64,000 bases of DNA from Klebsormidium nitens. Taxonomy: Eukaryota; Plantae; Klebsormidiophyceae. The stretch covers positions 186,001 through 250,000 of the forward strand of contig DF236986.1 in assembly GCA_000708835.1 (NCBI GenBank), read 5' to 3'. Shown here in pieces: positions 6,901 through 57,900 of the stretch. The notes under the pieces are model-generated. The model saw only the letters and a list, made by a program, of their open reading frames with translations, was not told the origin of the DNA and made no database searches. The translations under genes and the position numbers were made by a program. The first letter of the stretch is position 1. Each line of letters opens with the position of its first letter.

Positions 6901-7446
6901 GCTCATATTCTGCTGCGCTCATATTGCTCCGCACAACTGTGAGCCAAGACACAGACTAGTTACGCATTGCTTGCAATCATCTTCGACTTATGTTAGAACC
7001 TGTGTAAACTTTATGTGCAACGTTTAGCACTAAATTGAGGTGCTGCAGAACCCGCATACAACAGGGAATGCTGTTGATTCAAGCCCGTTCTCAATCCTGC
7101 CCTGATAAGAAGTCCAACAGTAGATAGTCATACAGCAACCACACCACAATCTGTGGTCATAGAGCAATCTAGCCTGCAAAGTAATACTGCCCCTTGATTC
7201 CCCAAGCTAACCACTCCACACATACGCTGGAACTCCCAATTGACACTGCTCGCACAATTCAAACCACACTATTCATGGAGGGCAATCAATCCACTTTCTG
7301 TCATACGGTCTGGGACAATTGCTACTCACCATCACGTCCATGTGCAGCCAGTCCGCCCCCGCCTTCTCCATTCTCTCCGCCTCTGATGCCAGGCATGCAA
7401 AGTCGCACGAGAGCATGGACGGAGCAATCTTGGCAGCGGGCGCCAT
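3927..7446 (-). CDS. RPE: Ribulose-phosphate 3-epimerase, cytosolic type, 7 exons
   Basis: Exons 7446-7330, 6870-6803, 6315-6209, 5936-5839, 5088-4996, 4616-4575 and 4082-3927 join in frame through GT-AG introns. Motifs [54 protein letters not shown]. No transit peptide. Confidence 0.97.
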
Positions 7447-22100: not shown

Positions 22101-25100
22101 GTCCGAATTTTAACCTCTGAAGCATTTGTGGACGTGTAACAGATGGATGACGTGAGCACGTTCGCCGTCATCTGAAGACGCGACCAGATGAAGGGCTTTG
22201 CTGTCGCCCAAGTCGTCACACCACAAAAATTCGACAAAATGGTGCGAGTTAGGGTTCCGGGGCTAAATTGGAGCGGCTCACCAAGGTGAAAGGAGGGGGC
22301 TCGCACAAGGCTATGAGTTCTAGAGGGGGCGGTATAATCGAAGCTATCCATCCTGGCCTTCAAAGAAGAAAGGGCGATGGCGAAGCGGCAGGCTAGGATG
22401 GGGGAGCGGGAAGAAAACCACCTCAGGACGTCCCAGCTCTAAACAAAGCGCGCGTTCAAGAAGGCAGGCGACCTCAACTGCATCTAGAGCCATAGCTACC
22501 CTTTTCTGCACTCGTGTGAAAAACGAAAAGGTGCTGAAGATGAGTCTACTCAGATTATAGGGCCCGCAAAACCTGCCAAAGACGATCACGGACCTGCAAA
22601 CGGGGCTCTCTTTGAACGGAGAAACACTGAGGCGCTCTGCAATCTTAGCGGCCTTCGCGCCTTATCACCTTCACCTTCATGAAGGCTACGCTCTACCGGT
22701 CACTATGCGCAGCCAATATCGACCACCTTATTGTTTTAGCCGCCCTTTCGAGAATCTGCAAGCTCACGTTTTGGGTGCCGCACTCGAGCGAGAATGCGTG
22801 CCCCGTCTGCTTGTAGTGGTTCACCGCGTGCTGCATCTTGTAGCGCCCGCAGCCGACGTTCCCGCAGATGACGCACATCCACAGGTTCTCCGTCGTGCCG
22901 CAGTCGTCACACACTGAGTCGGTCGGCTGCTCTTGGACATATCGACAGACCTGGGGCATAGGATATGGGGGTCAGCAACAGGATATGACGTGAGAGGCTT
23001 CAGTCTATTTTGAGTTTGTTCCCGCAGATGACGCACATCCACAGGTTCTCCGTCGTGCCGCAGTCGTCACACACCGAGTCAGTCGGTTGTTCTTGGACGT
23101 ATCGACAGACCTGGGGGCATACGATATGGCAAGTGAGCAAGGTTAAACGACTGAGGAGGCTCCAGAATGTGTCACTTGAATCCCTGCGTTAACGTACATC
23201 CACAGGTTCTCCGTTGTGCCGCAGTCGTCGCTCACTGAGTCGCACGGCTGCTCTTGGACGTTGCGGCAGACCTGGGGGCATACGCTATGGCGCATCAGCA
23301 ATAAGGTATGTCGCAGGAGGCTTTGAAAGTGTCATAATTCTGTGACAGCAGATGCAATCCTTCAAGCGCTGCACGCACCCATCCTACCCATTGACTAAGC
23401 CGACCCGACCAAATACTGGCACTTATCCTTGCACTGAGCTTATCTATCCTTGCACTAGGCTAATATTGCTCAATGATTCTATCGAAATCCTCAAAGGAAC
23501 GAATTACCTGGACGTACCGGGAAAGGTGAATCCGCACCGCTTGGAGCACGAAAGAAAATTGGAAACAAGTACTTCCAATCGAAAAAGACCGGTGCATAGA
23601 GCAGCATGAGACAGGAACGTACCGGACAGGTGGAGTCGGACCATTTCGATATACAGCTGCTGTGGAAGGAGTGGTTGCAGACGGTGATGAGAATGCCGCT
23701 GATGTGCGCATCCATCCGTTCTGAAAAGGAGGCAGGGGTCAGACGTCAGCATTGCAGGGCCCACGTCAGTTTCGGTATGTGCATGCATCATCCCTGTACT
23801 GTCACCCATGTCAGCAGAATTCACTTCACGTCAGCGCATGTCAGCCGTCTCAGCAAAGGCAATAGTATCCAGATGTGGGCGACGGGAAGAAGGCCTCGAA
23901 ACGGAGACGGAGACGGCGTTGTGGGCATTGGCAGTGGACGAAAAGTTCGTTCATCAGGACGATATTGGGAATTCTTTCACGTCATTGACAGCGACGGCAG
24001 AACCGACAAGTCAAAAGTCTATGATCGGGACATCAAAAAAACCGGTTGGAACGACCTGACCATCTGCCAGCTGCAAACCCGTCACCACTTTGAGCAGCGT
24101 CACTAAACCCACCAATTTTCCGATGTAACCCAGACTTATCTGTTTTCTGCTTGCGTAGACTGCCCGTCTCGCTTACTTCGTCAACATCCGCTTTCTCTGT
24201 CACGCTGGGCGCCGCACTTGAGTATTCCTTTTCGTATTTGCAATTTAATCTGAACCTAACCCAATCAGCCTCGTTGAAGAGCCTCGGTGCTTCCGGGCGA
24301 ACCATTCGATTAGGGCAATTGTAATTCCCTGATATCAGAATGGTTGACAAGAGTCTCCAGTAACACCAGAAACAACTAAACCCACAAAACAGACGTACCT
24401 AGGCAGACTGGACACGTGGGCAGTTCCACCAGGCCTGCAGGTGGGGTCGACGCCACCTCGTCCGAATCCGTGTACTGGACGTCCGAGGTAAAGAAAACGT
24501 GGCAGAAGATGGGCTGCAAGGAAATGAAGGCAGACTTGAGTTCGAAAATTTACTTTGAAACGAAAACGTCTACACTACTGTTAGCAACAAGAGTCGGGCT
24601 ATGAGCATCAGCGGCCGATTAGTGTAAGTGGCATCGTCTATAGATGGAAATGATATCGAGAAGGTCTTTCCTCTGAGAAGCAAACGGAATGAGAAGCACA
24701 CGGAATGGAATGGCATGCTGCTCACAGACGACCGAACCTGCCTGCGTATCCAACTTCGTCAAGCTAATGGGTGTCACCCGAAAAGGTACCAAAATTGTGT
24801 CTGCTTATCTTCCATAACGAGACGAGGAACAATTCGAACGAGCTACTCCGGACAGAAGAAAGTGAAATGAAGACATAAAAGAGGATGTTCACGTGTTCCT
24901 CCAGGAAGAATGAAAGGATGGTAGTAAAGAGGACATCCAAGCTCACCTCCAGGGAAGAAAACTGCTTCCCGTTGTATGACAGGTAGAAGTCGTCAGCATG
25001 TTCCTGCGAGTCGAACTTAAGCAGGACCATGTACTGATTGGTCGCGTTTTCGTACCTGCAACAAAGCTGTCCAGATTTTAGTTGATGATGCGGAGTGATC

Positions 25101-31564: not shown

Positions 31565-34500
31565 TCAGATTTTGCTATATTGAAGGTTATGATGTCGCAC
31601 AGAGAAGATGTCCTGCAAGACTCCCCCTTCGTTGACGTCAGCCAACTCCCGAAGCTCGTCCACTGTCGACCGCCAGGCAATGTGCCCGTCGGGCCGCACG
31701 AGCAGTATCACTCCGGGGCCGATACGTGGCATCGCAGCCCAGCTCTCATGTACATCTACCAGGTGCAAAACGCTTTGATCCGTTTCCTCATTTCCTATGG
31801 GGCTTGTCCGCTCGCTCCTGTTGCCACTGATCTCTTGAGAGTCTGCTTTAGCGCCGTCGGGCCAAATAACGGCCCCACGAATTGGAAACGGAAGTAAGCT
31901 TTGGAGGTCTGCGAGCGCGCGCTTCCAATCGGCGCCATCTCGGTCGACTGAGACGATTAGCCTCAGGAATAGCTGCCCGGAATCTGTCAGGTCCAAGGTC
32001 GATACGGTGTCCTGCAAAGAGGCATGCATCTGCTTCAGCGACGATTCCAAATCCCCATCAGTACCGAGATTCGTTGAAAGCGCACTCCTTTGAGCGCCGA
32101 ACATTTTGAATATGCTCAACATCGGCACGGATACTGGTCTTAACCCTCCCGCACGGGAAACTATGAGGATCCAGAACCGAGACGAGTTTGTCTTGGGACT
32201 TTACCGTAGACGCTCTCAGGATGACCAGGAGAAAGTAGACGTTTGAGAGGGGACTAGGGTTCTGATCAACCCAAAGGAGCGGATCTCTTCGAGTAGCAGG
32301 AAAGTAACAAGACGAGCAACCATTGAGGATGAACGAGAAGCAAAAGCTCATACGTGCCCCACTCCCAGAAGCAAGTGACGGCATCAACCTGCATTGCCAA
32401 CGAAACTCCATGCATAACGTCACTCAAGCTCTGTGTGGATCCTGACACCAAGTAAGAACCTGACCTTTGTCGCAGACACAGCGCCAGTTTCGATGTCAAT
32501 CAGCCCAACTGCGAGCTCGCAGTGGGGCAACCGGAACCCCGGCCGCGTGTCCGGCTCATAGCCGGTCCGCCTGCCCATGGCGTTTGCCCGCTCCGCACGC
32601 TCGATGACGTCAGGCACACCGGTCCAGAGCGCTCCCTGGGTGTACCTGTTGACGTTTTCAGACGGGGATCAGGATAAGCTATGAGCAATAGGTTCGAAGA
32701 GCGTATGAAAAAGTGGAAACATGAGGATGCAATAATGTACACCGTAGCGGGAAGGCCTTGATCCGAAGAAGAGTGACGCCACCTATCCGTGAATGACTAA
32801 TTCGACTTGGTTTTCCATATAATGTTGCATAAGCGCTTTCAGATTCCGTCGGCTGCAGCTGGTTACGCTCGCCCCTTTTCAAATCACCCGTCAAGAATCA
32901 GTAGTGGTCCGTTTGCTCTCTCGGTCTGGAAGCCTTTTCCCAAAGACTGACAACTCCCAACACGCTAAGGACAACGTTGCTTAGGATTCCGCTGCGCTAA
33001 CCGGAATCCGAGGTCCTCCGCCGGAAACTGCAGCTGCAGGCTCTCCCCCTCGCGTATGATCCGCGCGACTTCCGCCAGCCGGGCCCTGCCCACGGGGTTG
33101 TTGGCGTTTAACAGTAGGGGCGACATTTGTGCGCGGCCCAAAGCAAGGCCTCTCTCCAACAGTTCTCTTTGGTAGGTCGCAGGAAGGAGGCTGATAGGCG
33201 GGCGGTTGAGGGTCCGGAGAAGTAACCTGGGCGGTTAAGAGAAAAGGTTTAGGAGCATTTTAACGAGGGTTAGGCGCGGCCCAACGGAAGGCCTTTCTCG
33301 AGGAGCTCCCTCTGGTAGGCCGCGGGGAGGAGGCTCATTGGAATTTGGGGGCCGGTTGAGCGCCCGGAGAAGTAACCTGGGCGGTTACGAAGAAGGGTTA
33401 GGAACGGGTTAGCAAGTGTTAGGCGCGCCCCAACGTTTTTTTTGAGGAGCTCCCTCTAGTAGGCTGCAGGAGGAGGCTGATCGGCGGACGGTTGAGCGTC
33501 CGGAAAATAAGCTGGGCTGTTAAGAAGAGGTTCAGGAAAGGGTTAGGGAGGGTTAGACGCATCCCAATGCAACTCTCGAGCAGCTCCCTCTGGTAGGTTT
33601 CGGGGAGAAGGCTACAATCATTGGCGGGCCGTTGAGCGTCCGGAAAAGCAGCCTGGGCTGGATTTACAAAGGGTAACGGAGGAACCGGTGAGGGTTTAGG
33701 CAGCTCGCCAAGGGTTGGCGATGCTAAGTAACAAGACGTATAACGCCCGGAGAGAACAGCGCTGCGGGTGCGGAGAGCTAAGTGCACAGCACAGCGACCG
33801 AATTCTTCCAAACGGACCGGAAGAAAAAGCAAACGTCTAGGTCAAGACCTGGGTCCGTAACTGAGGTTGACGAGGTGAAGTTTTGAGACAGAGACCCAGG
33901 AAAGAGGAAAGTGCTTCTCGGCAGACGGGCCAGAATTCGGACAGAAGCAAGTGAGCCAATTTCAAAACGAACTCTGCAACGTAAGGAGCATCATCGGAAT
34001 GTCGTGTTCGGAAAAGATGGAACGTGAACGCCTGAACGCCTGAGAGCCTGACGTTAGCTCGCACAAGACGGCGTCCCGAAACACGACCGGACGTCACTCA
34101 CTTTGCTGCGGCAGGGTCCAACCCCAGCGCGGACGGGATGGCCATGGCGCCCTTGAAGTTGGACACGCTGAGCGCCGTGTTCGCCTCTGCGATCTGCGGA
34201 AAATGTTCGAGAGCTGAGCTGTGCGTCCAATCTAGTTCCGAAGTCTTGCAAAATTGTTTGAGCAGTAGTCACGTTTCCAGTGAAGGGCTCCGTGTTCGCC
34301 TCTGCGATCTGCGGAAAATGTGAAGAGCTGAGCTTCGCGTCCAGCCTAGTTCTGAGCCTGCGGAAACTCTAAGTAGCATCCACGTCTACAATAAACCACG
34401 TTTCCAATAGAGGGCGCCTTGTTCGTTTCTGCAAGCTGGATCACGGTCAGGAAGACCTAAACTCTTGATCAATGCAATTTCAAGCCTCTTGCGAGCGGTC

Positions 34501-37500
34501 CAGAGCTCCATTTAGGATCCTTGAGGAGGCGAGCGGAGCCGTGATCTTCAAGAGCTTCTACCAATCACTTGCCGTTGATGACGAAGCACTCAATGACGGC
34601 CCGACTCCCCATTCCGCAAGGAACTGCCAGCAGACGACTCGCAGTTCCAAAACCTTTGCTAGGAACCTACCTTCAGATCAAAGGAAGTGTACTATGAATT
34701 AACGCATCCAACTTTCAAAACCAGATTCAAAGCATACTATTTTGAAAACCCTGAGTCTGAGAAAGTTTGAATGCGGTAACAAATTTGAGAAAAGCCCCAG
34801 TGACTCACCGGTCGCCTCTCCTGTTCGTACGTCCGCATAAAGCTGACGTCCGAAACGCCGCGTATGACAGCCGCGAGCTTCCAGGCCAGGTTGTGAGCGT
34901 CCTGGATTCCGGTGTTCATTCCTGCGGGGAAAGGAACGGAACCGGAATCAGTAACGCGAACTTTAGGGTTGTACGCGTCCTGGTTTCCGCTGCTCATTCC
35001 TGCGGGGAACGGAACGGTATTGGAATAAATAACGCGAGCTTTGAGGCCTGGTTGTGGGCGTCCTGCTCTCCTGTCTTCATTTCTGTGTGAACGGAATGGA
35101 ACTGGAATGAGTAACGGGAGCCTGAAGGCCACAATGTGAGCATCCTGGAGTAGGCTGTCTACACCTGCAGGCGACGGAACCGAAACGGAATGAAAAACGC
35201 CAGCTTTCAGGCCAGGATTTGACCGCCTGCATTCCGGTGTTCATTCCTGCGAAGGATGTTGAATGCAGGTTTTATTAAGGCGGCTCAGATGGGGGACGCA
35301 ACGGGAACGCACTTGGCAACGGGTCAGAAGGCCTCCACTCTTTGCCTGATGCTGTCCTCGACTCTGAACACGCACGAGAGGAGTGTTCGCCGTTGTTGAA
35401 GGAGACAGGGGAGAAGACAGGGAGACCTGACGCGAAAGTGCGAATGGCCGGATTTCTTCGAAAACGTCTCCGCTTGACCGCTCCAAGTGAGTCGTCCTTC
35501 CGGAGAACTGAACCTTGAAGAGCAAGAGCATCTCTTCTAAAGAACCAAAGGACTGAGTCAAAAGGCTGTAGGGCAGAAGCATCGGGCAACGATCAGAAAT
35601 GACTTGATAGCACGGCTTGGCGATGCTGGCTGTTCATCATACCAACGGAGGAACGGAAACGGAACGAGCGGGTTTTTGCAAGAGGGAAGGGGCCGTTCTG
35701 CTTCTTACTGCCTAGGAAACGCCTGGAGTCTCGCCTTTAGAAGACCGGACGAGCAGCCTTCACAGGGGCAGTGGTTGATACGTGAAAGGGGGTGGATTTC
35801 AGGGCCTCACCGAACCCCCCGGCGGGAGGGAAACGATGAGCTGCATCGCCCATCAGAAAGACGCGCCCGCTTTTGTCGGCGTACTTCTCGGCGACTTGGG
35901 CGGTCATGGTCCAGGGCCGGATCGAGCGAACTAGGACTGGAGAGTTTGCGTCGCCAATCGCCTTTTGGATCATATCCCGGCAGACCTGATACACGATGGG
36001 GCGGAGTTTGTGCATCAGCCGCTGACATAAGCAACTGAAGTGGTCTAGCGGAGCAGAGCCACCCGCAGGTAGCCCGACTCGAAGAGAGCCGTCAGAACGA
36101 AAACGCCGCGTTTCCGGGTGTGACCACTTCGTACCTAAGTATCCCCATCTTGAGAAAGTCACGTAATCAGTAGCTCGAGGGATGCTGCCTCCAAATGGGG
36201 AACACGAGGATGCGGGTCCTTCAGCACTTGCTTTACAAGTGCTAATGACAGCGACCAAACCTTTTGTTTCAGAAGAAGTCGCGTCCGTGTAGGAAAGAAG
36301 CGAGCAAAACTCGAATAGGCGAGAGGCTCCCACCGCAGTGAATAAGAGTTTTGAGCTTGTTCGTTGCCTTTCTTCTCTCTGATCCTTTCTCATCGCCGTG
36401 GTTCACTGTCTTTCCCATCTGCGTATCCTTCGACTGACCACCATCCACTCCGAAAAGGAAAAGCATACCGCGACTCAAATATGCAGTCCTCGGGCGCCCT
36501 ATGAAAGAGAAACGGTTCCCCCCTCCTGACAGACAGTTCCTTCAAAACAGATCCAAACTGGTGCCCAGGGGGGTAAGGTTCCTGGATCCTCTAAGGGGGC
36601 GACATGGTGGCAAGCCTGTGCCACTCATCCCCCCCTTGCGACTCAAATTCCTCCACAACCAACATACAGACCAGAAGCGCAGACCATTTGGCGCGTGTTC
36701 GCATCGCAGGGAACCCGGCTACCCACCTCGGGGGTGTATTCCTCGGGCCTTTGCTGGGGGGGGTAGAACGGGATCTGCGCCACGAACTCCCCCTTCCTGA
36801 GATCGTGCGCCACAACGACCATGATCACATCTTCGTTGAATACAAAGTACAGCATTGCCTGCCGCCCGTTGAGCTTCTCATGCAATCCCCGACACTCGAA
36901 ATGCACGCTGAGGAGCGATTCAATTGCGCCATCCCCTTCTAAAGAGATCCGCAAACGGCTTCTTATTCCGCTGCTTGCGCCATCCGCCGCGATCAAAAAC
37001 CTGCTATGTACATTGATTGAGTGAGGGCGAGCCGTATTTGGCTGATCTCTCGCAACTCTGGTTCCTAATTGATCCACAGTGCTCAATGGATTTGTATGTT
37101 CTGAAGCTGATTCTTGCAATGCTTGATTAAACGGGACTACTCTTGATAACACCCCCCCGGCTGCCGTCTCAAACGCCATGCACTTGTAGCCCTCTAAGAT
37201 ACACCCAAGCCCCTCGAACCCCCCAGCCAAATCGTCATCTCCTGCGCTACCCCCCACATCCTGCGCCGACCCCCTCGCTTCTTTCTCGAGCGCTTTCGCG
37301 CTTCTCAGCAGAAGCGGCACCAGCTTGTTCTGGGAGAAGTGCGCCACCGACACGGGGCTCATATTCGGACGCGCGGTCTGGTCCGAAAAGTGGTCCACCT
37401 GTCCGAGAACCGTCCCTGTCATTGTGTGGCAGTAAATGAAGCGGCGCCACTCCTCGAGGGGGGGCTGCTCGCGCCCGATGGTCGTCGCAACGTCGCCCAT

Positions 37501-38592
37501 GTGACGAAAGATCTGCAGGTGTCCAACTTGCACATCTTATCAGAAGACCGGTTTTCCTGTGTTTGAAAAGCAGGTAACATCCCAGCTGTAGTCTCATTAG
37601 TGTCACCTGCCTAGCAGAAGATCTGCAGACAATTCAGACTTTGTGGTGATGATCTTTTTTAGGAGCAGTGCGTGAAGATCTCTCTGGTGCTGGAGCGCTC
37701 GCAGCTCACTTTACCTGTTGTAGAATGATAGACTCTCGGGGGTGGGCTAAACGGAATTGCTAATCGCGGGGGGGCTGATGGCTCGCACCATCTGTCCTGA
37801 TGAGATCTGGATTTCGACTGAATATAACCTGCCAAAAAATAATTACCCGGTGCGGGATTGAGTGGTGTGACGGCTGGCACCAGCCCGAGGTGATTCAGGG
37901 TTCGCACTTCCTGGAGCGGAGCGTTGTCCACCATGGTGTCAAAAAGGTGAGTTCCTACACACTTTCGCGCGATTGGCACTGACTATTCTGTTCCACCGCC
38001 ACCGATCATCAGATATGGCTTTTCGCAAAGCACCAATCAATGTGCGCCACCTTAAGAAGTTGTCATGGCAGGTTTTGAAAGTTTGTTTTGCATTCAAAAG
38101 TTGCATTCTGCTAAGGCGGCACATTGATTGGTGCTTTGCAAATAGCCACATCTGATGATCGGTGGTGGTGGAACAGAATAGTCAGTGCCAGTTGCCCCAA
38201 GCGATGAAAGCAAAGCCAGAAGCAGACCACAACAGACAGCAGGCAGAAACCAAGGCGCCCACAAGTAAGATTTTACACCACCTCACCTCCATCGTCCGGT
38301 TGTTTATGAAGTGTGCCTGCGGGTGCGTCGTGGGGTGCAGCCTTTTCTCCACCAGCAGCGATCTAACGCCTAGGTTTGAGAGCAGAATCGAAAGGGAGAG
38401 CCCCACGGGCCCCCCGCCCACTATCAACACATCTGTGTCGACTTTTCGGGGGTGCCCGCTGGCAGGCAAATTTGAGGGGGGGGAAGTGGCCAAGAATGAA
38501 GGTGAGCTGGTGAAGGATCTTCTAGCGTGTGAGGGCCTCCCCCAATGCAGGGCGCCCGTGAGAAGCTTTCTCATTGCAACGGTGGCGGACAT
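31565..38592 (-). CDS. Flavin-dependent aromatic-ring monooxygenase (FAD_binding_3, PheA/TfdB type), probably the CoqF/At1g24340 (EMB2421) family; start at 38592 or 38574
   Basis: DVLIVGGGPVG (Rossmann), HPQAHFINNRTME, FLIAADGASS (DG motif), [32 protein letters not shown] (GD motif), C-terminal LLVRPDGHIAWR. The Arg/Ser-rich, acid-free N-terminus resembles a mitochondrial presequence. The family call is firm; CoqF orthology is inference. Confidence 0.88.
33290..33790 (-). repeat. About four tandem acceptor-side echoes (~140-bp period) of a monooxygenase exon start
   Basis: The live cccag|GTTACTTCTCCGGACCCTCAACCGCCCGCC... near 33228 is repeated with decay upstream in the intron. Confidence 0.88.
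34291..35265 (-). repeat. Acceptor-side echoes in two further monooxygenase introns (34291-34350, one copy; 34960-35265, about four copies)
   Basis: ttttccgcag|ATCGCAGAGGCGAACACGG is duplicated; gcag|GAATGAACACCGGAATCCAGGACGC is repeated about four times. Confidence 0.85.
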
Positions 38593-40323: not shown

Positions 40324-43300
40324 ATGACGGTCGACGCGCACTCCACGGTTGACGCGCACTCGACGGTCACGGACAGTCACTCGGCCGGGAACGGGACCGA
40401 GTCATGCTACGTGGCTGATTTCCTTGGGATGCACCATGAGTCGCACGAGGGCGCGCTTTACTCGGTGTACAAGTCGCTCGAGTGGGGCTGCTTCCTGATC
40501 TCCATCGGGCTGTTTGTCTTCTACCTGCAGCAGTACCGCAAGAAGACGGCCGGATGGGAGGGTGAGGGAGCGCAGTGTGGCTGTGCAGTGTTTGTGAAAA
40601 AGCTGTCTTAAGTTTGCAGAATGGCTGTCTTATGTTTGCAGAGTGGCTCTCTTGTTCCGATCTTTGTCTTGTGAGCGACTCTGGTTTGCCATCCACTTTG
40701 TCATGGGTGACCCGTTTTCTTTAATGATTGCTGGATTGGGGACTGGGCATATCTGGTGAGCAATGCATTGTGGGGCGATCCTGATTTGCGTGTTAACCGT
40801 CCGGATCAGTCCTAGTCTTCTGAATGATCTATCTTACTAGGCAAATGCGAGTAGGATCAATGCATGTCCTATGAGCAATTTGTTCATGGGCGAGTCTCGT
40901 TGGTAGACAATTCTGGCCTGTGAACAGCGTCTGGCGTTAGAAAATTATGGCATTTAAGCAATTGAGTCTCTTGGATATCAGTCAAGTAGATCTGTGGGTG
41001 CATCCACGTTATAGTAGGCAATGGACGAAATCAGAATTTGGTTTCACAAAAGATGAGTAATCACGGTAGAAGGTCTAGGTAAGGAGGAATGTGCAAGTGG
41101 GAAGCAGACTCCCTAGGCAAAGGAAGGAGTCAAGCGTTGCTGCGACAATGATTCACCCGCTTCTGAAAGAATCTTGTGTATACTATGACTAAGTACAAGT
41201 GTGACATCCTTCATGGGTGGAATTGATTGGTGTCATTTAGGGTGGATGGTTTAATTGCAATCATGCCTTTGGAAGTGAGCACTTCTGGTAGAGCTTCCTT
41301 ACAACGGCGTTGAAGAGCATAGGGTCCAGAGTAACTTTCCTTTCTCCTCCTCTTTGCTTCCTGGTAGCGTTTGACGTGCTTTACCCGTGTGTGGTCAGAA
41401 CAATTTTAGGTTTGCATGTCATCCAAGTACAAGTTAAGTCGCTAACCGGAGCTCGGGCTCACCTACATTCATAAAGTTTTTCATTTACAAATGAGTTGCT
41501 AACCTGTGCTGACCCCGTTTCTCACAGTTATCTACATCGCCTTCATCGAGTCGTTCAAGTACATTTTCGAGATCTTTTGGCCCCACAACAATCCCGCGCA
41601 GCTGAACATCTATGGCGTCAACAAGAGCGTCCCATGGGTTCGCTACATGGAGTGGATGATTACCTGCCCTGGTGAGCTTCGTAACCCCTGGTTTGGCTAA
41701 TAAACCCTTGTTAGGTAGTCATTCCTTACCTGTCCTGGTGAGCTTCGTAACCCCTTATATGGCTGGTAAACCCTGGTTAGATTATTGTTTCTTACGTGCC
41801 ATTGTGAGCTTCGCAACCCCTTGTATGGCTGGTAAACGCTGGTTAGATATTTTTTTTTTACCTGCCATTGTGAGCTTCGTAACCCTGGTTCAGCTGGTAA
41901 ACCCTGGTTAGAACTGCGTGTAAACTGGTTGGACCTATCAATCCGTCGAATACCAGCTTATCTGTCCCCGTGATTACCAGGTCGGACCCTGGTTAAGGTT
42001 TCGCGACTTTTCTGCTCAACCTCGAATCTGCGGATCTAGTTGTGTGCGAAGCTCGATAAGCTCCTTACCGAACTGTTGAGCAGCTCGAGAGCTGGCCGTT
42101 TGATTGTAAGCTTGTGGTTACCTCGCAACCTCCTTCAAGCAGAAATCAGAATGATTGACAATCCGAAAGAAAGACGGGCCTCAGCTTCGTTTCACATCCA
42201 CGTTGCCTGACCCCATTCACACCGCCTCCCCGCAGTGATCCTGATGGCGCTGTCCAACATATCGGGAGAGGAAGGTGAATACACTCACAGATCGATGCAG
42301 CTGCTGGCGACTGATCAGGGCGCCATTCTGTGCGCAATCACCGCGGCCGCGTCCGAGGGCGCGATCTCCGCCGTCTTCTATGCGATTGGCGTCTGCTACG
42401 GCATCTGCACCTTCTACTTCTGCCTCCAGGTGCGGCCCCGCCTGGTTTTCGATTCAAACCCCCAGATCCTGCAAGTTCTCTGTGGAATTGACCGAAGTGT
42501 TTGTCTCAACCCTGATCCAAAGGCGTCCTGTTCGGAGGACTTTGCTCGAGTCGATTCGAGAAGGATACGAAAGCGTTTCGCGGAAAGAGAACGCGTCTCC
42601 ATATCTTGCGCACTCTGTAACCGTTCTAATTGATTGTTCCTCTCGATCGGGTCCTTTTGATGTTTCTCTTTGTTATTTCGAAGTTGACTAGAAACACTAG
42701 TGCAACAGCTGATGAGACCTCAGCCTGAAGACCTTCGGAACATTCCAAAGCCAACCTTTTCCAAAATGCGTTCGCCAACCACAACCTCCTCGCCCGTTCG
42801 CTGACGCGTCGCTGACGTCACCCGCAGATCTGCATCGAGCCGTACTTCGCGCTCCCCGAGACGTGCGTACCCAAAAGTCCTTTACAGTCCGACTCTATGT
42901 CATAACAATATCTGCACGAGCTTCCCATCTTCCTCGCCCGATCGCTGACGCGTCGCTGACGTCACCCGCAGATTTACATCGAGGCCTACTTCACGCTCCC
43001 CGAGACGTGCCACAGTGCCGTCAAGTGGATGGCCGTCATCTTCTACGCGGGGTGGCTGTGCTACCCCTGCTTCTTCCTCGCCGGCAGCGAGGGCTGGGGC
43101 AACCTCTCCTACGAAGGCTCTGCTATTGGCCACTGTATCGCCGACCTGCTGTCCAAGGTTAGAACTAGACCGGGCGCTTTCTCCTTTTCAGTGTTTGTAC
43201 GTTTCAGCTCAAACGGTCGCGGAGGAAGGGGCAAGGTCTCCTACGAAGGCTCCGCCATTGGTCTCTGTATCGCTGACCTGCTCGGAATTCGGCCGGGGCA

Positions 43301-46300
43301 ATTATCCGGGCCCCTACTACAGCTTGGATCACCGGTCGGGTCACGTCCAGGCTTGGGTCAAGTTAGGCGCATAGCTTATCCTCCAAGAGCCCCTTCACTC
43401 TTACCCGGCCTGTTGCACCCCGGCGCGTAAATGGTGCTTCGATATCCCCTCGCAAGTTACGTACTTCCACTTGGGACCCCCCACGGCTCACCTGGCGGAT
43501 TTTGCTCCCCCCTCCTTACGAACGCGCGGCGCGTATCGACTTCCCCCTTCCTCCATCTTTTCATTTTCTCGGCACCCACTTCTAGCTTCCATGTTTTCGT
43601 TCCCGCAAACTCCCCCCCCCCGCCGCTTACCCGGCTCGTTGCGTCCCCCCTTCGCAGAACGCCTAAGGCGTAATGCACTCGTGCTTTTACATCTCAATCC
43701 TTGGTTGCAATTCCATTTTCTCTCCCTATCAAGAACTGCTTACTTCCGAAACACCCCCCCCGCTCACCCGGCTCTTTTTGCCCCCCCTCCGTAGAACGCG
43801 TGGGGCGTGATGCACTGGTGGATCCGGTGCCAGCTGGAGGAGTACAAGCACACGCACAACGGGCAGCTGCCCCACTACTCCCTGGAGACGCGCGCCAAGA
43901 TGCGCGCGGAGGCGGGCCACATCATCGCGGGATCCCTCGGGTCCGTACTGCACGTGGCAGGCCACCAGCACCACCACTTCCACTTCGACGAGGACAGCGG
44001 CATGCAGGGCGCGCAGGTGGGTTTAGCTTTGAACTTATCAGGGTTAAGGGCTTATGCTTTTGGGTCTATGAGATCAAAGGTTTGGGTTAACGCCACTTCC
44101 GCTTCGATGAGGATACTGGCTTGCAGGGCGCGCAGGTGGTTCTCTTTTTCTAAGTTATAGGCTTGGGGTTTTGGTGGTTCTCATGTTGGCTTCGTTACCG
44201 CCACTTTCTCTTCGAGAACACCGACATGGGTTGTGAGGCCTTATACTATTTTCAAAAAGGCTACTGGGATTTATACGAGGGTTTGTGTCTTTAAAGCATC
44301 GCAACTCCGACTCTTACCGCCAGATTTGATCCTTGGAGGTCGTAACGTCCATTGTAAAAGTAAACTGTACCGTTACGCGTGATGCATCTTGGGCTGTTCT
44401 CATTCTTTCTCCCAAGGCCGGCCCCACAATACAGAGCGCCGCAAATCCATATCCACCCCCCTCAAACATCGCGTCTCAACCACCCCCTTCTCGTTGTTTC
44501 AGGTCCAGGGCCAGCCCCTGGCTCAGGCCAACGAGGGCGCCAACTCGAAAGCTTCTCTCCTTAACGGAAAGGCAGTGCAATCTCAACCGTTTTCCCCCCC
44601 TGAAAAGGTCTCGGACACAACCCCCCCTTTCCGCTTTTCCAGATTCAGGGCCAGCCCTTGGCTCAGGCCAACGAGCGCGCCAACCTGAAGGCGTCTCTCC
44701 TCAACGGAAACGCCGTCAACTACAACCAGGCCGTTCAGGCTCAGCCCCAGGCGTTCCAGATCCAGTCCGGCGAGGACGGTTACGTCATCTCCATGAACCA
44801 GGGCGAGTCGTCCGCGAGCGGGTCGCGCAGGACCACCCAGAACATGTGAGCCCGGCTGACGTCACGCTGACGCGGCGTTGCAAAGCTGCGCTTTACTTTG
44901 AATTTTTGAAGGCAGGAAAATTGAAGTCGAGAATGGGTAAAGGTCTCGGGTCCGCGCTTTAAAGAGTAGCGACGTGCTTCTGAGTATCTGTCTTCTTGCC
45001 CCTCCCTATAGTTTCCCGCCTCGACTCCCTGGTTCCATCCCGTGAGTCCTTTTGTAATGTAACACCCTACCAAAAAAAGTAACGGAAAAATTTCTCCTCC
45101 AACAATCCTCCTCGTAGTCTCACACTCTCCCCCCACCAAAAGCAATATTTGAATACGCCCTTTCCACCCCCCCCTCCCTCGCAGCGAGGGCCCCAAGAAG
45201 GACCCCGTCGCGTCCGCCTTCTTCGTCCCTTTTCTTTGCCCTTAATGTCACCTCCTCCCCCCCCTCTGAAAGCACAATTCTAAATCTCTTCACCCCCCCC
45301 TTCTCGCAGCGAGGGCCCCAAGAAGGACCCCGTCGCGTCCGCCTTCTCCAAGGCGCTCGGCAGCATGAAGAGCAAGGTCACGGAGCACTTCACGAAGGAC
45401 CTCCCCCCCTCCGCGCGCCCCGACTCGCCCTCCCGCCGCGGCTCCGCGCGCGGGGGCGCCGACGCGCCGACCGCGCAGCCGCAGCAGAGCATGAAGATCG
45501 ACCTCAGGGATTTGGCGAACAACCCGCAGCTGCAGCAGCAGCTGAGCATGATGCTCAAGGGACAGATGGCAGGTCAGGATAACACCCTTTCTTAACCCAC
45601 CTTAAATTCGATCGGTTTGAAGGTGGTTACGCTCTGAAGACTGACCTCAAGGATCTGGCCAACAACCCGCAGCTGCAGCAGCAGCTGAGCATGATGCTCA
45701 AGGGACAGATGGGTGCAGGTGGGCATTGAATGGTGTTACATTTCCTCATTATGCACGATTAATGGGTTCTTGCGTTAAAGGGCTCTACTTCTTTGGACGG
45801 TTGGAATTTTCGCCAAGGACAGATGCACGCCCGTGAGGCCAGAGTATACAATATAAGTATCATAATCTCTCAATAAGATTGGCTTCGTACGACGCAACTC
45901 GCTCACTGGGAGATTAGTATATCTTAGAGGTCCAAGAGAAGACCATAATTGACGTCACATTTGGCTACCTGGATGTAGAAGCGGCATCGAAGGCAGCCCG
46001 TAGTGGGCCTCCATTCAAGCCGACTGTAAGATAGATAACGCAGCCAAGAAACGTCCTCAATCCACGCCTCGAAAAGTGGACTGCTTTCAATCCCTTGTTT
46101 ACGTATCTCCAATCTCAATTCAATCCTTGTCTAAATCCTTTCTAAATCCTGCCCTTCTTCTCCAGGCAACTCCAACACCAACCAGGGCAGCAACAACGGC
46201 AGCCCGCGCGCGCGCCCCGTCTCCGAGGAGCTCGCGCAGCCCGCGCGCCTCCAGAAGGCCCAGAGCGCGCGCGCGACCAGCAACCTCGACGACGAGATTG

Positions 46301-48163
46301 AGGAGCAGGCGCCCGCGCAGATGAGCCGCCGCCCCAGCGCGCGCGTACCGCGCGCGACCGCCGCCGCCGACGAGGAGCAGGCGCCCGCGAGGACCCTGTC
46401 GCGCAAGATCAGCCGCGGGGATGGAGGTGAGAAGCGAGGCGCCATCGCGTTTCAGGAAATCTATTATTTGCAATGTGTTTCCTTCTCTGTACTTGAATCA
46501 TTTTCTTAACAGAGTCCTGCTTGAAGGCTTTCTTATGGTGTAGATATCGTGGGCGTTCGATACGGTAGGTGCATTATTGTGAGACTCTCGTGTGTTCGAA
46601 ACGATCACGAACTTGCCGTTTGCAAGGCGTTCTTCTCCAAGATCCTCTCCTTGCTTGTCAAGAAAGGATTTGAGAATCCACTGTACTTTTCGAGTCCGTT
46701 CAGCAGTATCCGACACCGCACAGAAGTCCAAACTACCACATCCATTGACACGGTCCCGTTTCCATTTCTCAGGTGAGCCCGTGAGTGAGGAGCGCCTGCA
46801 GAAGCGCCCCAGCTACCGCGCCGCGAAGGCGGCCGCGGAGGCCGCCGACGAAGACATGACCGACGCGCCGGCGCCCGCGCTCGCGCGCCGCCCCAGCGCG
46901 CGCGCGCCCGCCGCCGACGCCGACGAGGAGACCGCGCCGGTACGCACCGCTTCTCTGAGGCGCGCCGGGTCCAAGAGCCCAGGGAACAGCCTGCCTTCCA
47001 GCCCCAGCCGCAGGGTTAGCAGGGCTAACTCGCTGAGGGCCCCGGTTAGCGCCTCGGTGCTGCTGTGCGACGCGGACGGCGACATGGGCGACTTCTTCCT
47101 GGACCAGTTCGCGGCCGTGCCCAACTCCAAGTGCAGCGTCAAGGTGAGGGTTCAGGGTTTTCCAGCTTCATGTTTAAGGGTTTTGGTTTTAGGGTTTCAA
47201 AGCTATCAACGTAGAGAGCTTCCTTGAGCAGCTTTTCAATCGGCTACTGTCCAAAGACGTAGATCTTTTGCTGCTTCTGACTGAACTGCGAAGCCCCTTC
47301 AACGTAACACAAAGACGTTGATTCCAGTCAAATGTCCGTTCTGGAACGTTCAAAGCCTCGAGTCACTTCCTCGCAACTAGCAAGCAAAGGGATTGCTGCT
47401 GCAATGAAGCATCTGCAACTCGTTCCGTCAAACCGACTACGTTGGAAGCTGCACAATCGCTCCCCCCACTAAAATCCAAACCCCGCGCGCGCAGGTTGTC
47501 GCCACCCCCGACGAGCTGATCGACGCGCTCGCGACCGGGCGCGCGTACGACTTCGTGATGGTGCCCAAGGGCGTCATCACCAGCGACCCCGAGATCAGCG
47601 AGGAGATCCGCGCGCACGCGCAGACGCCGCTCGTCGCGTTCGGGCCCGCGCTCGAGGGCATGGCCGTTGCGGAGGTCAAGGCGCACATGTTCGAGCTTGG
47701 TGAGCGCGCGCGCTTTCCCATACTGCTCCAAAATAATGGGGAAGAGACGAGCGAACTATATTCTGTGTAGCCGAGAGCTCTCTGTCTACTGATGGTCTAC
47801 TAGATCCACCCGATTGAGTCTCATTTACATGAGCGAGTCGACGAAGAAGGAGCTTGCGACCTTCGAATCAAGAGATGCAACTCGATTACCTGTACCTCTT
47901 CACAAAGACTCAGAGTGACTGAGCCGATTGATTTCGCCCAACGACGCTGCAAGCGCATGACCAACTTGCAGAAGCCTGCCCCCTCTGCCAGATCAAAGGG
48001 TCGCCGCCCTCCGTTCTCCCGATCCCCGAGACTGACCGGTTCTTCCCCCCGTGCAGATGTGGACGATTACATTGGGCTGCCCAAGAGGGGCCAGGAGTAC
48101 CCGGTGGAAGACTTGGAGGCCCTGGTGTGGAAGTACAAGAAGGTGGCTGACGACAGCAACTAG
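40324..48163 (+). CDS. ChR: Cation channelrhodopsin with long cytoplasmic tail and C-terminal receiver-like domain (797 aa by my model, 11 exons); likely KnChR
   Basis: Exons 40324-40561, 41528-41671, 42236-42429, 42972-43157, 43795-44016, 44643-44845, 45310-45572, 46166-46426, 46773-47143, 47495-47699 and 48057-48163 sum to 2394 nt in frame. Motifs AGWEVIYIAFIESFKYIFE, PWVRYMEWMITCPVIL, LATDQG and IADLLSKNAWG (retinal Lys). Confidence 0.97.
41661..45722 (+). repeat. Splice-junction echoes in channelrhodopsin introns 2-7 (eight sites)
   Basis: 41725-41912 (donor x3), 42800-42866, 43230-43283, 43395-43680, 44103-44140, 44491-44577, 45170-45222, 45642-45722. Confidence 0.88.
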
Positions 48164-49662
48164 AGGGTGACGCCAGCGTCCTCTCTCCGGGGAACCAGGA
48201 CCGGGACCGGAACCGGGGCCGGGACCGGCCCCCGACAGAGATCAAGCCTAGGAGTTGGATTGGCATTCATTTGTTTACAGGAGCATGGGCGGATTCGGCA
48301 GTGGACAGCCAGAAACTTGAGAGCGACAACGTCGGGGCTCCGCGCGTTTTGCGCGCGAGCGGAACCTGACGTCAGAGCTTCGACCGTAGTGCATAGGGAT
48401 CCCCCAGAGCGGCGGGGTTTAGGGGTTTAGGGGCGAAGCCTCTGGACCCCGCGGCCGCGCCGCTCGTCAACACGAAGCAGATTGTTCGGAGACGCAACCC
48501 GACCGCTTCGCCGCGCCCGACTCACATTTTTATGTAGCGCAGGTTTTAGATAAATACGCAGGGATGAGATATATATTAGTTAAGCGCTTTTCGGATGACT
48601 TGCGAACTATTTGCAAGCTCCAAAACAATGCCAAAGAGCTGAGCTTCAGCGTTGGCGGCAGAGGAACCGAAGGACCTAGCAAGCTTTGCTTCAGGTAGGG
48701 TTTTGTGTGTGCAAAGCAGAGCAACCGAGATCTTTGAAAAGGGGGTCGAGGGCTCTCGATCTATCAAAACATCCGTGGCACGGTGCTTCAACGGCTTTTC
48801 AATTGATTTTAAAGAGCATGACTGATGAAACAAAAGCATTACCATGACTCACGTGTCAAGCCGATTGCATGAACAGCACAATTCCTTTCCGTGCCTTCTT
48901 CCACATGTGACTTCATTGCTCATGCAAGCATCTGGTGATTCGGCTGGAATTGCAACGGCAATGATGTAGCGTCGCATGCCTTTCCCGATAGTTCCTGCTC
49001 TTTGCAACGACGGAGCGGTTGAACAGGCGGCTTTCAGATGGACTCGAGCCTGCTCAACTAGCTTGTGCTTGCGCGCTTTGCAATCTCAATTCCATTGCAT
49101 TCCGGCTCTTGCGCGGTTAGCCGGGCGAAGCAATGAATGTATCGCGTCCTAGGGGCCCTCGGGGCTAATTGGTTGGGCGGAGTGACAACCGGAACTAGAT
49201 ATGAAAGGTTTGCATCGGAACATGGATACACACCGCGGGTATGCCGCTTTCACTATGCACTTGCTGACAAATTAGATTACTTATACATTGCTTATAGGCG
49301 CCAGGAACGTGCATACACGAGGCAGTCTTCAGGGCCCCCAAATTCTAGAGGCTGGCTCGAACACTCCTAAAAGATCGCCGGAATCTCCTGAAGCTAAGAT
49401 AGCGCCCATTATTCAGGCTCATTGGTTTCTTTCGAACGGATCAAGTGCAAGCTTCCGAATCGTTTTTGTGTCAAAAGCTAGTTCTTGTGCTTTCGTAAAA
49501 GTGCATTCACTTAAACCTCTGCTGCGATTTCTAACCACCGAAGTTCCTTGAAAAACGGGTGACGTTAGGAGTCTGTGATTAGGTACAAACCCTTGCTTTG
49601 ATCCATGAGACCATAGCAGGTTCCTTATGAAAAACCGTGAAAAAGAGAGAAGACATCCTAGC

Positions 49663-50567
49663 TCATTCTCCACACTTGAAGAACTTTAGAACAGCAGTTC
49701 CTGTATCGGGCCTTGCTGAGTTCGTACAGTGAACTCCCCCGATGATTCTCCACGTCAAACTCACTGAGCTGACAACCTCGATTGGCAGTTTTCTATTGCT
49801 TACGCCTGCAGCCCAGGCCTCAGGACTGCAGGTGATCTCAAACTCTTGACTTATATATCCACGCAGACTTTGCTGTATTTCCAACCTCAAGATCGACTTT
49901 GGATGACTCCAAGCTCCGAAGGACATGCTGAGAGCGCGCGCATGGGCCGCCGTGACGTCAGCTCGTGAAACGAAACCCCAGCCAAGCACTCTCCCAGAAT
50001 GCGGACCGTCCGTCTTTTCGACGATAAAACCCGCACCGGACAGAGGCAACGCTGCGGAGACCTCTATCGAGCACTCAAACCCGCATGTTTCAAGGAACCT
50101 CCAGTCCGAGAAGAGGCGTTTGTACCCCCCCATGTAAGCAAGCTGCAGAGCGCTGAGGTTCTCAAGGGGCACTTCAGGCCACGTGGCTTGGTAAAGCGTT
50201 TTCCAGAGGGATTCTCCGGAGCCGAAGTCATTGAAGCCCGGCGGACGCAGCAGGCACGCGCGAGCGCGCGCGCGAGTGCGCGCGCATCTGGCTGACCGAC
50301 CGTTCCCAACATCAGGTTGAACAAGGTCGAATCGGTGCAGATGGCGGGTTCCTGGGTGACGTCATCATTTCCAGCTGTAGCGTCGGCTTGCAGGTCGCTC
50401 ATGGTTGTGCACTCTAAGATGACGTCAACTTTCTGGTGGTTCGTCTTCTCATGACCTTGCTGAGAAAGCTGTATCAGGTCTCTTTGAAAGGTCTTCTCAT
50501 CTGCAAAAGCAGTAGGGCTCGCAGTTGTTCCATGTTCTTTCATGTTACGAGATGTTATTCTTGTCAC
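49663..50567 (-). pseudogene. Intronless F-box protein copy 1, frameshifted by a 1-nt deletion near 50236
   Basis: The upstream frame ...LFNLMLGTVGQPDARALARALARACCVRR shifts to FNDFGSGESLWKTLYQATWPEVPLENL...GGYKRLFS...LPLSGAGF...WGFVS. The start codon is uncertain. Confidence 0.7.
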
Positions 50568-54955: not shown

Positions 54956-57900
54956 TTAGACCAGGGTCAGTTCGCTCGCGACTAATCTACACCCCGCGTA
55001 CCCCTCAACGCAGGACGTCTCTATCGTGAAAGCCACGTCAACTACACAGCCGTGTGGGAAGAAGCTCCGGAAAATGAGCGGGTCAACGACGCCAAGTGGC
55101 AGTCGTTCGATGCCCTTTCCGGAGCGTTTCCGTCGGAGGAACTTGGTGGTATACGTGGCGGTCTGCTGGTGTCCCCGGGCGCCGATCCGAATACGGATCG
55201 AATCCACCTCGCCTTCCTGCAGTTGAAAACGAAGACTTCATTTGATGAGTCGGCCTCGCTTGAACAGAGGAGTCGAGGGGTGGGAGCCTATCAAATCAAG
55301 GGACTGTGAAAAGACAGCAACGTTGCGCAACGAGCAGGTTATATGGATACTGGAGGCACTTCAAAGCAGATTGGCCAAATTACCGTCAAGGTGCAAACGG
55401 CGACCCGCTTTTGCACCCCAGCCTGACAATATTCTAGATGAAATCGAAGCGGAAGCATATAAGAAGACGAGGAGAAGACGCTACGGTGGGGCACCGTTTG
55501 TTGGGTAGTGCAAAACAACTAGAGCTTGACTCTTTCAGACCCAACAGCGGCTCCAGAACTATCCCAAACACAGGAGCGCCCACCTTTTGGACGACCGTGC
55601 GGCGCCACACGGCCGGCCCCACACGCGGGCTCAGCTGCTGACGCAGCATGACGTCACACCCCTCCAGGAAGTTCTTGAGCTCCGTCGAAGGCTCCCCCAC
55701 GACGGAGAACGTCGGGCGGCCGTGCGCATCGTACGCGTACGAGTCCCCGACGCTGAAGCGCAGCCGCATCTGGTGCTCCTGCACCCGGAGGGGGGTGTCG
55801 CCGAAGTGGATCGTCAGGGAGGGGGGGCCTGCACAAGGCAAAAGTATCCCCCTGTTATGCGTAAATTTGTGAATTTGGGATTCTGGGGAGGTTTGGCACT
55901 GGCACTCCTGCACCCGGAAGGGGTGATCGTCTAAGTGGATCGTCAGGGAGGGGGGGCCTGCAGAAGGCAACATCGCCCCCTGTTGTGAGTCAATTTCTGG
56001 GGGAATCTGCGCTGACGCTCCTGCACCCGGAGGGGGGCGTCGCCGAAGTGGATTGTCAGGAAAGGGGGGCCTGGACAGGGCGAAGTGTCCCCTTGATTGT
56101 AGGTGGATATCATGGGGGGCTTGATACAAGCCAATATAGCTTCCTATCCACCTACAAAGTGGGGGTCCCGCAACAACTGCAGCAGCCAAATGTGAGCCCC
56201 TTCTAGCATTCAGTAGAGGGCCCCACACGTGTCGAGATGCAGTCTCTTGATTTGTGCAAAGCTCAAGTCTCGAAGCAAAAACCGTTGGAGATCACAAATG
56301 GCAACATCGTTTGGCGGACTGCATTAGCCGGCATGCAAGTAGTAGCCCTCTGAAGTTTAGAGCGGTCGAAGATAGAGTCCCAAGTTTCGGAGCAGGTTGC
56401 TTGGTTCGCCGAGGCGTTCCTCAGAAGATGGAGAGCCTACTGGAAGGCGCTCCGGAGTGAATGGAAGGGAAGACCTTACAAGGCTTCTTTCTGTTCTCAA
56501 GCACTGTTTATGTAACAAGCAAATCGCCACAAAGTGAAACAGACGGACAGAACTTGTCGACCACCAATGCAGCAATTTGCTCACCTGCATGATGGACCGA
56601 CTCAACCACGTGCAGCAAGTCCACGTTCACTTCCCGGGGGGCGTACGCGGGCCACACCGGCGACCCTTTTCCCCCCGTTTTCCGCCTGGGGGTCGCCCCG
56701 CTCTCCCCCCGGGTCCACGACGTCGCCACGTCGCTGCTCGACGTTTCGACGTACGGCCCCCGGAGCGTCTCCGCCGGAGAGTAATCGTCGGGGGGCTGTA
56801 ACACGTGCCCGAGCGGTCCCCTCTTCGCGAACTCGCCGCGGTCCCGCCCCGAGCTGCTGACGTCAGCAAGGCCCGTGCTGGCGTCAGCGAAGCCCCCCGG
56901 CGGGCTGTGCCGGGGGGGCGCCCGCATGACGAAGTAGCGGTCGCCGGTCGCGCGGGGGAACCCCCCCTCGGCGAAACCGGGGGAGTTGTTTCCGTGGACA
57001 CCGGGGGACGGCACCGCGCCAGGGGGGTCGTACGAGGAGCGGCGAGGGGGGGGGTACCGTGTGAGCGGGAGGTCGATGGCCATGTGGGCGGAGGAGTAGC
57101 GGCGGGAGGGGCTCTCGAGGGGAATTGCGAGGGGGTCGAAGACGGCGTTTGGGCCGAAGAAGGAGGTCTCGGGGTAGGCACCGGAATCTGTGAGAGAAAA
57201 TGTACAAACGACAAGATTACCAGCTGTCTAAGCACATTTACTCGTACTAGCAAGACGAAAAGAAGGCTTATTTGAAGCTTTGAGAATCTTCGGCCCTGGG
57301 TCTCGCGATTCCGTGGTGGATTTAGGATTTTGCGGATTCAGACAGGGAACACTGCCAGCCAGAAATAGGTGAATCCTCAGCCCTCCAAGAGAGTATTAGT
57401 TTCCGGCTGAAGGTTGAAATGCCTGTAATTCGCATCAGGCAAAAATTGATTCAATGCGCTTTGCGTGGGCAGGCATTATCCTCAAGATAACTCGTAATCG
57501 GAGTAGTTATTTATATCTGCTTTATTTTAGACAAGCTCACCTCGATTCCCCGCCTCCAGGCCTAGCGTAGACGTGCTTGCAGGGCTTGATCCCACAGTAA
57601 CATACGCCTCCTCTGTATACCCACCATACGACTGACTCAACGGATCCAAACTACTCTCCCTCGCAGACTGGAACCCTACAGGCCCGCTGTCAACTGACTC
57701 GCGATGCGCTATGATCAGGCGGTCAGCCTCCCGGTTAGTGCTAACCCTCCCCGTTTTGCTCTTTCCGACCAGTTTCTGGAGCGTGGGAAAGCATATGAAT
57801 TTCCGCTTCGGTTGGAAGTCAGGGGTCGCGGGCGGCTCGGGCTCCTCCAATGGCGACTCGCCATCTGGCACGTCCTCGTCGTCGTACCGGAAGTGGTCCT

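Follow-up and report, generated by a model that had tools for sequence, protein, structure and literature searches.

Which channelrhodopsin is encoded in a 64,000-nucleotide (nt) stretch of the Klebsormidium nitens genome (GenBank assembly GCA_000708835.1, contig DF236986.1, positions 186,001 to 250,000 of the forward strand; hereafter the window), and how far does its native product extend? An initial annotation of the window had placed a cation channelrhodopsin at 40324-44016, and these coordinates proved exact, with an ATG at 40324 and the exon 5 donor directly after 44016. We find that the whole gene occupies 40324-48163 on the plus strand and is almost certainly the K. nitens gene for KnChR, a chlorophyte-type cation channelrhodopsin. 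The gene is thus already known: KnChR has been cloned, patch-clamped, mutated, solved by cryo-electron microscopy (cryo-EM) and used in neurons and zebrafish. Our sources on the protein are Tashiro et al. 2021 (PMC7902849), Wang et al. 2025 (PMC12177036) and the structure PDB 9j7w.

Identity and exon structure of the gene

We set the borders of exons 1-5 by hand from GT/AG sites and the reading frame, and searched each translated exon singly against the sequences of solved structures. All five were 100% identical to the KnChR chain 9j7w_A (E-values from 2e-21 to 8e-40), and the matches, whose ranges are given in the list below, run in order and contiguously along the chain; chain residues 54 and 102, which lie outside them, correspond to the codons that introns 1 and 2 interrupt. 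Chain 1-265 corresponds to KnChR residues 27-291, so the deposited protein maps fully onto window exons with zero differences across these 265 residues. This exact and contiguous match confirms both the identity of the gene and its exact splice junctions. Downstream of the rhodopsin domain the published full-length KnChR sequence agrees with our model as well. The next-best structures were C1C2, ChR2 and iC++ (E-values from 1e-6 to 1e-13, exon by exon), and Pfam Bac_rhodopsin (PF01036) was matched on exons 2-4.

These results bear out the earlier assignment of the locus to a Klebsormidium-like alga and to the chlorophyte-type cation channels, as well as its remark that a K. nitens channelrhodopsin had been characterised, which is the very same gene. 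Comparison with KnChR, which the initial annotation had proposed, removes the novelty and leaves the channelrhodopsin call standing; the optogenetic interest it saw in the substitutions has already been pursued in the published KnChR papers (PMC7902849, PMC12177036).

At the level of single residues, all 29 positions checked from the numbering of the two KnChR papers carry the published residue in our spliced model, among them C28, E79, V80, E87, K90, Y91, E94, P115, R118, E121, C126, E139, D154, E196, Y239, D250, K254, N255, H261, R265, E269, K272, Y282, E285, R287 and R291. Relative to ChR2 of Chlamydomonas reinhardtii, the equivalents of E82, E83, E90, K93, E97 and R120 are E79, V80, E87, K90, E94 and R118, and those of E123, C128, H134, D156, D253 and K257 are E121, C126, A132, D154, D250 and K254. 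The retinal-binding lysine K254 sits in a DLLSK motif of transmembrane helix (TM) 7. The counterion pair (ChR2 E123/D253) is present as E121 and D250, residues to which the structure paper assigns this role (PMC12177036), and the DC gate (ChR2 C128/D156) as C126 and D154, a pair stated to be conserved (PMC7902849). Three of the five glutamates of the TM2 ladder are kept (E79, E87 and E94), with V80 and P98 at the other two positions. Partial TM2 glutamate ladders are common in the channelrhodopsin family. Twelve of the thirteen earlier residue calls were right; the remaining one had read the equivalent of ChR2 E101 as His, whereas both an ungapped alignment to C1C2 and the KnChR paper (PMC7902849) place P98 there, with His99 one position on.

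The complete gene comprises 11 exons with canonical splice sites and an open frame of 2394 coding nt, which specify 797 amino acids (aa); our model thereby reproduces the length of the earlier 797-aa model. Exons 6-11 were assembled from downstream open segments and from contigs of public runs placed on 42500-48350. The contigs stem from three runs in two studies, X1 representing a related organism (95-99% alike) and X2 and X3 an organism at least 99% alike. They support seven of the ten junctions: six by joints across GT..AG introns, marked in the list (the last of them, 47699/48057, after a refined cut), and one by the loose end of an X1 contig, which connects the last 27 nt of exon 3 to exon 4. 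Spliced contigs in public runs show that the gene is transcribed and correctly spliced; they carry no information on expression level. The exons, all on the plus strand, are as follows.

40324-40561, plus strand: exon 1, start codon (the same in the ortholog described below), N-terminal region with C28 of the dimer disulfide, TM1 and E79; 100% identical to 9j7w_A 1-53; donor GT
41528-41671, plus strand: exon 2, TM2-TM3 (V80, E87, K90, E94, P98, R118, E121, C126); 100% identical to 9j7w_A 55-101; Pfam Bac_rhodopsin
42236-42429, plus strand: exon 3, end of TM3 to TM5 (A132, D154, A157, A161); 100% identical to 9j7w_A 103-166; X1 loose end to exon 4
42972-43157, plus strand: exon 4, TM6-TM7 with D250 and K254; 100% identical to 9j7w_A 167-228, E 7.6e-40; Bac_rhodopsin at 36.8 bits; contig joint 43157/43795
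43795-44016, plus strand: exon 5, the last part of TM7, then the proximal C-terminal modulator (H261, R265, Y282, R287, R291); first 37 residues identical to 9j7w_A 229-265; joint 44016/44643 in X2 and X3
44643-44845, plus strand: exon 6, cytoplasmic linker; contig joints 44016/44643 and 44845/45310; agrees with the published sequence
45310-45572, plus strand: exon 7, cytoplasmic linker; joint 44845/45310, and joint 45572/46166 with a 32-nt contig side at the exon end; the ortholog exon is L001 9952-10208
46166-46426, plus strand: exon 8, Ala/Ser/Arg-rich linker with RRxS-type motifs; acceptor from an X1 contig, donor 46426 chosen in agreement with the published sequence and the ortholog
46773-47143, plus strand: exon 9, linker, then the start of a receiver-like domain from about residue 665; an X1 contig covers 46852-47141, joint 47143/47495; agrees with the published sequence
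47495-47699, plus strand: exon 10, central part of the receiver-like domain, with P718 where the phospho-Asp would stand; joined by contigs to exons 9 and 11
48057-48163, plus strand: exon 11, end of the receiver-like domain, TAG stop at 48161-48163; joint 47699/48057, GT..AG

In one low-depth X1 contig, a cryptic acceptor at 42708 (segment 42709-42783), 263 nt upstream of the true exon 4 acceptor, follows the end of exon 3. This form looks like a minor mis-spliced product, and its reading soon meets a stop in K. nitens. Within exon 1, an 18-nt coding tandem repeat of 2.3 copies (40327-40368) encodes a repeated TVDAHS motif at the N-terminus; the region is less regular in the ortholog, and identity over the N-terminal 45 residues is only 52%.

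An ortholog and the length of the product

A word-based protein search with exon 7 returned a single match, fragment P0001, which led to locus L001, a 54-kb JGI metagenome contig (sample 3300060285) that carries a complete KnChR ortholog at 5815-12988. The ortholog encodes 795 aa in 11 colinear exons with the same intron phases and the same start codon. Synonymous divergence (dS) from KnChR is about 0.61 overall, and the host of L001 is therefore a different species, another Klebsormidium-like one. Two scans of metagenome contigs, one with exon 5 as query and one with an alignment of exon 4, found no relatives, and we know of no characterisation of the L001 channelrhodopsin.

The published KnChR sequence of 831 aa (supplement of PMC7902849) equals our 797-aa model with 32 residues inserted between exons 7 and 8 and two letters added at the end, in a comparison that allows for letters dropped or misread in the machine reading of the supplement PDF. 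The two extra letters follow the final Asn, where the genome has the TAG stop and no matching letters; counting the 32-aa insert, the genomic reading comes to 829 aa, two short of 831. The insert is encoded by a single segment, which we call exon 7b.

45623-45718, plus strand: exon 7b, 96 nt that repeat the tail of exon 7 in tandem and in frame, between an AG and a GT; present in the published 831-aa sequence, outside the 797-aa model

Whether native K. nitens mRNA includes this segment determines the length of the product. An exon here would be in frame with AG and GT at its edges, and the segment stands in the sequence used by the KnChR papers, which derives from the genome project's gene model. 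Several features of the segment argue against its use. It is a 94% tandem copy of 45492-45569, the last 78 nt of exon 7, and resembles unused boundary copies in introns 2-6 that are described below. Splicing it in would need a preceding intron of 50 nt, compared with 346-966 nt for all other introns of this gene and 248-998 nt in the ortholog; a literature search turned up no usable K. nitens intron-length statistics by which to judge such an intron. The copy is absent from intron 7 of L001, and the L001 protein can be aligned with the 797-aa model, which has no insert. Only one contig spans 45572/46166, and its 32-nt side is placed on the end of exon 7, where the GGT characteristic of exon 7b is missing; this favors direct joining of exons 7 and 8, although the contig comes from X1, the related organism, has just those 32 nt on the exon 7 side, and has no counterpart from K. 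nitens. Weighing these points, we consider a longer native product (829 aa by the genome, 831 as published) possible but rather doubtful, and we moderately favor the 797-aa form as the native K. nitens product.

Exon 7b is one of a series of boundary copies in this gene. From intron 2 to intron 7, every intron contains one to four tandem copies of its own exon edge with the splice site, in a decaying state and spaced by 66 or by 119-144 nt; several of the copies retain an intact AG or GT. None of these copies in introns 2-7 is present in the L001 ortholog, which indicates that they arose after the split of the two species.

41660-41912, plus strand: intron 2, array of 3.8 copies of a 66-nt unit, starting 12 nt inside exon 2 and repeating its donor (TRF score 310; repeat family D1)
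42782-42866, plus strand: intron 3, copy of the exon 4 acceptor and the first 39 nt of exon 4, 91% (repeat family D5)
43214-43282, plus strand: intron 4, copy of the exon 4 tail, 81% (repeat family D8)
43470-43713, plus strand: intron 4, the acceptor region of exon 5 in two decaying copies, one after the other (by alignment)
44093-44139, plus strand: intron 5, copy of the exon 5 tail and donor, 87% (repeat family D11)
44447-44576, plus strand: intron 5, copy of the exon 6 acceptor and exon 6 head, 75% (repeat family D2)
45168-45222, plus strand: intron 6, copy of the exon 7 acceptor and exon 7 head, 95% (repeat family D9)
45635-45712, plus strand: intron 7, copy of the exon 7 tail within exon 7b

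The in-frame 39-nt copy at 42828-42866 was considered as an extra exon and dropped, as it is absent from the solved, functional protein. Similar short-range tandem duplications, with spacings of 113-165 nt, occur at about nine other places in the window (9538-9788, 10244-10423, 12791-13021, 21126-21508, 22860-23301, 33131-33675, 34889-35207 and 55767-56095 among them), some with splice-site-like motifs on the reverse strand.

Channel core and cytoplasmic region

Patch-clamp recordings of KnChR have revealed light-gated currents that reverse with voltage and, from shifts in reversal potential, conduction of H+, Na+, K+, Ca2+ and Mg2+, with action maxima at 430 and 460 nm (PMC7902849). The published Na+/H+ permeability ratio is about 10 times that of ChR2, and removal of the stretch after residue 272 slows channel closure more than 10-fold, with R287 and R291 as the key residues. 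The 2.7 A cryo-EM structure is a disulfide-linked dimer with E121/D250 as counterions, 6-s-cis retinal on K254 and the post-TM7 stretch resting on TM5 (PMC12177036). According to these experiments, KnChR binds retinal on K254 as a Schiff base, with E121 and D250 as counterions. Blue light (action maxima 430/460 nm, with 6-s-cis retinal) opens a pore formed by TM2, 3, 6 and 7, which passes the five cations named above, and the stretch lying on TM5 accelerates closure through R287 and R291.

KnChR shares with ChR2 and C1C2 (PDB 6eid, 3ug9) the seven-transmembrane (7TM) fold, the retinal lysine, E123/D253-type counterions, the C128/D156 gate and three of the five TM2 glutamates, with exon-level E-values of 1e-6 to 1e-13; the published identity to ChR2 is 34.5%. 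It differs from ChR2 in carrying Val, Pro, Pro and Ala at the equivalents of E83, E101, Q117 and H134 and, according to the published work, in its blue-shifted spectrum, its nearly linear current-voltage relation and closure kinetics tuned by the post-TM7 stretch. A blue-shifted action spectrum, high Na+ selectivity and Ala at the position of ChR2 G163 (A161) are features in common with PsChR and TsChR, whereas KnChR belongs to the streptophyte rather than the prasinophyte lineage and has Ala instead of Gly at the position of ChR2 T159 (A157).

Beyond the modulator lies a long cytoplasmic region, for which a FimV (peptidoglycan-binding) domain has been published at residues 410-690. Our searches do not support this claim: with exons 6-9 and exon 7b taken as separate pieces rather than one chain, nothing in Pfam was matched at E<=1, and the NCBIfam FimV models gave no match at E<=10. 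The sole NCBIfam match in the linker exon pieces was GltG, at 14.7 bits against a cutoff of 650 bits, and the pieces from exon 5 onward gave no FimV, LysM or Response_reg match in Pfam or NCBIfam. In the region in question, which is disordered in the cryo-EM map (PMC12177036), Ala, Ser, Arg, Gln and Pro are abundant. Its exons at 46166-47143 carry Arg-Arg-x-Ser-type motifs (RRPS twice, RKIS, RTAS and RRVS), which recur in the ortholog as RRPS once, RKxS, RTAS and RRVS, with KRPS in place of the second RRPS. These motifs may be kinase sites, and we infer from their conservation that they would fit a phospho-regulated linker.

The last approximately 130 residues look like the Asp-less receiver-like domain known from green-algal cation channelrhodopsins, a suggestion drawn from the literature, a reading of the motifs and a weak lead from a language model. 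By motif, a hydrophobic strand with acidic residues after it precedes strands of sequence YDFVMV, PLVAFGP and DVDDYIGLP; P718 and L770 appear to stand in for the phospho-Asp and the Lys, and a small residue in the VAFGP stretch for the Ser/Thr. An atlas feature search with exon 10 returned only CheY-like families (OKR_DC_1_N, Response_reg and GlnR_1st), at 0.83-0.88 and thus below the 0.9 line, so that they serve as a lead only. In green-algal cation channelrhodopsins, a receiver-like "con2" domain with mutated Asp57, Ser/Thr87 and Lys109 positions has been described (Rozenberg et al. 2020, 10.1101/2020.04.15.042127) and was restated in a later paper. The KnChR tail resembles con2, on motif reading, in its alternating strand and helix pattern and in the replacement of the phospho-Asp, Ser/Thr and Lys positions, and differs from it in its placement at the very end of the protein and in having no name in the KnChR papers. 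The cytoplasmic part would thus consist of a disordered Ala/Ser/Arg-rich linker followed by a terminal Asp-less receiver-like domain at about residues 665-797.

How the tail relates to published constructs follows from their lengths. The 831-aa "full length" construct was reported to express poorly and to give no photocurrent, and all KnChR constructs that do give photocurrents have 697 aa or fewer. The widely used 697-residue construct (in published numbering) stops exactly before the receiver-like domain, so the tail is absent from every construct with photocurrents.

Together our results lead us to lean, if only slightly, towards a combined reading in which native KnChR has 797 aa, the 831-aa form carries a duplicated insert (a recent copy of the exon 7 tail that was annotated as an exon) and the true C-terminus is an Asp-less receiver-like domain that has been in no functional study so far. 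Nothing counts against the identity of the gene with KnChR. Three points limit the model beyond that identity. The K. nitens product may have either 797 or 829 aa. The exon 8-9 junction is the only one within the contig-placed region 42500-48350 that no contig crosses; the junction we chose agrees with the published protein and with the L001 ortholog. The receiver-like domain lacks sequence-level support, in that Pfam was blank on exon 10 and sequence searches of the PDB, with exon 10 by itself and with a two-species profile of it, gave matches at chance level only.

Maintenance and surroundings of the gene

We compared KnChR with the ortholog by the ratio of nonsynonymous to synonymous divergence (dN/dS), with the following values.

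7TM domain (86% identical): 0.115
residues 273-328: 0.25
linker: 0.29
last 133 residues: 0.43
whole protein: 0.25

The 7TM domain is under strong purifying selection and keeps all the functional residues listed above in L001, including those of gating, the counterions, R287 and R291. These ratios and the retained residues indicate that the gene has been maintained in at least two species of the lineage.

According to the KnChR paper (PMC7902849), K. nitens has several rhodopsin genes, which could suggest that a distinct paralog, a second channelrhodopsin, or else a divergent allele lies here rather than the published gene. This is very improbable, because the 265 residues of the PDB chain show no difference, the remainder matches the published full sequence and the remaining K. 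nitens rhodopsins are described in the literature as histidine-kinase types; with identity complete, we dropped this explanation. Still harder to credit, for this mostly non-motile alga, is a locus that is silent or in decay: although only 3 of 24 listed runs contain words of the gene, at low contig depth, its 2394-nt frame is open with canonical splice sites, correctly spliced contigs exist, the 7TM dN/dS stays at 0.115 against a relative at a dS of 0.61 and the encoded protein is functional when expressed (as published), and a pseudogene was accordingly dropped on the open frame, the spliced RNA and the dN/dS.

The KnChR gene and its ortholog share synteny, with FAD_binding_3 genes at the same relative place upstream in both (window 31565-37533, minus strand; L001 977-3848). 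The upstream neighbors in the window are FAD-dependent aromatic-ring hydroxylase-like (monooxygenase) genes, and Rng_hyd_C is found in the window as well. Downstream, two open reading frames on the minus strand encode similar proteins with a common N-terminal motif and no Pfam family, and may be exons of tandem paralogs.

49663-50172, minus strand: open reading frame of 169 aa
51999-52562, minus strand: open reading frame of 187 aa

For users of KnChR, the practical consequence is that the reference "full-length" sequence probably includes a duplicated 32-aa segment. For the biology of the protein, truncation at 697 removes precisely the conserved receiver-like tail, which may have a part in trafficking or signalling in the alga.

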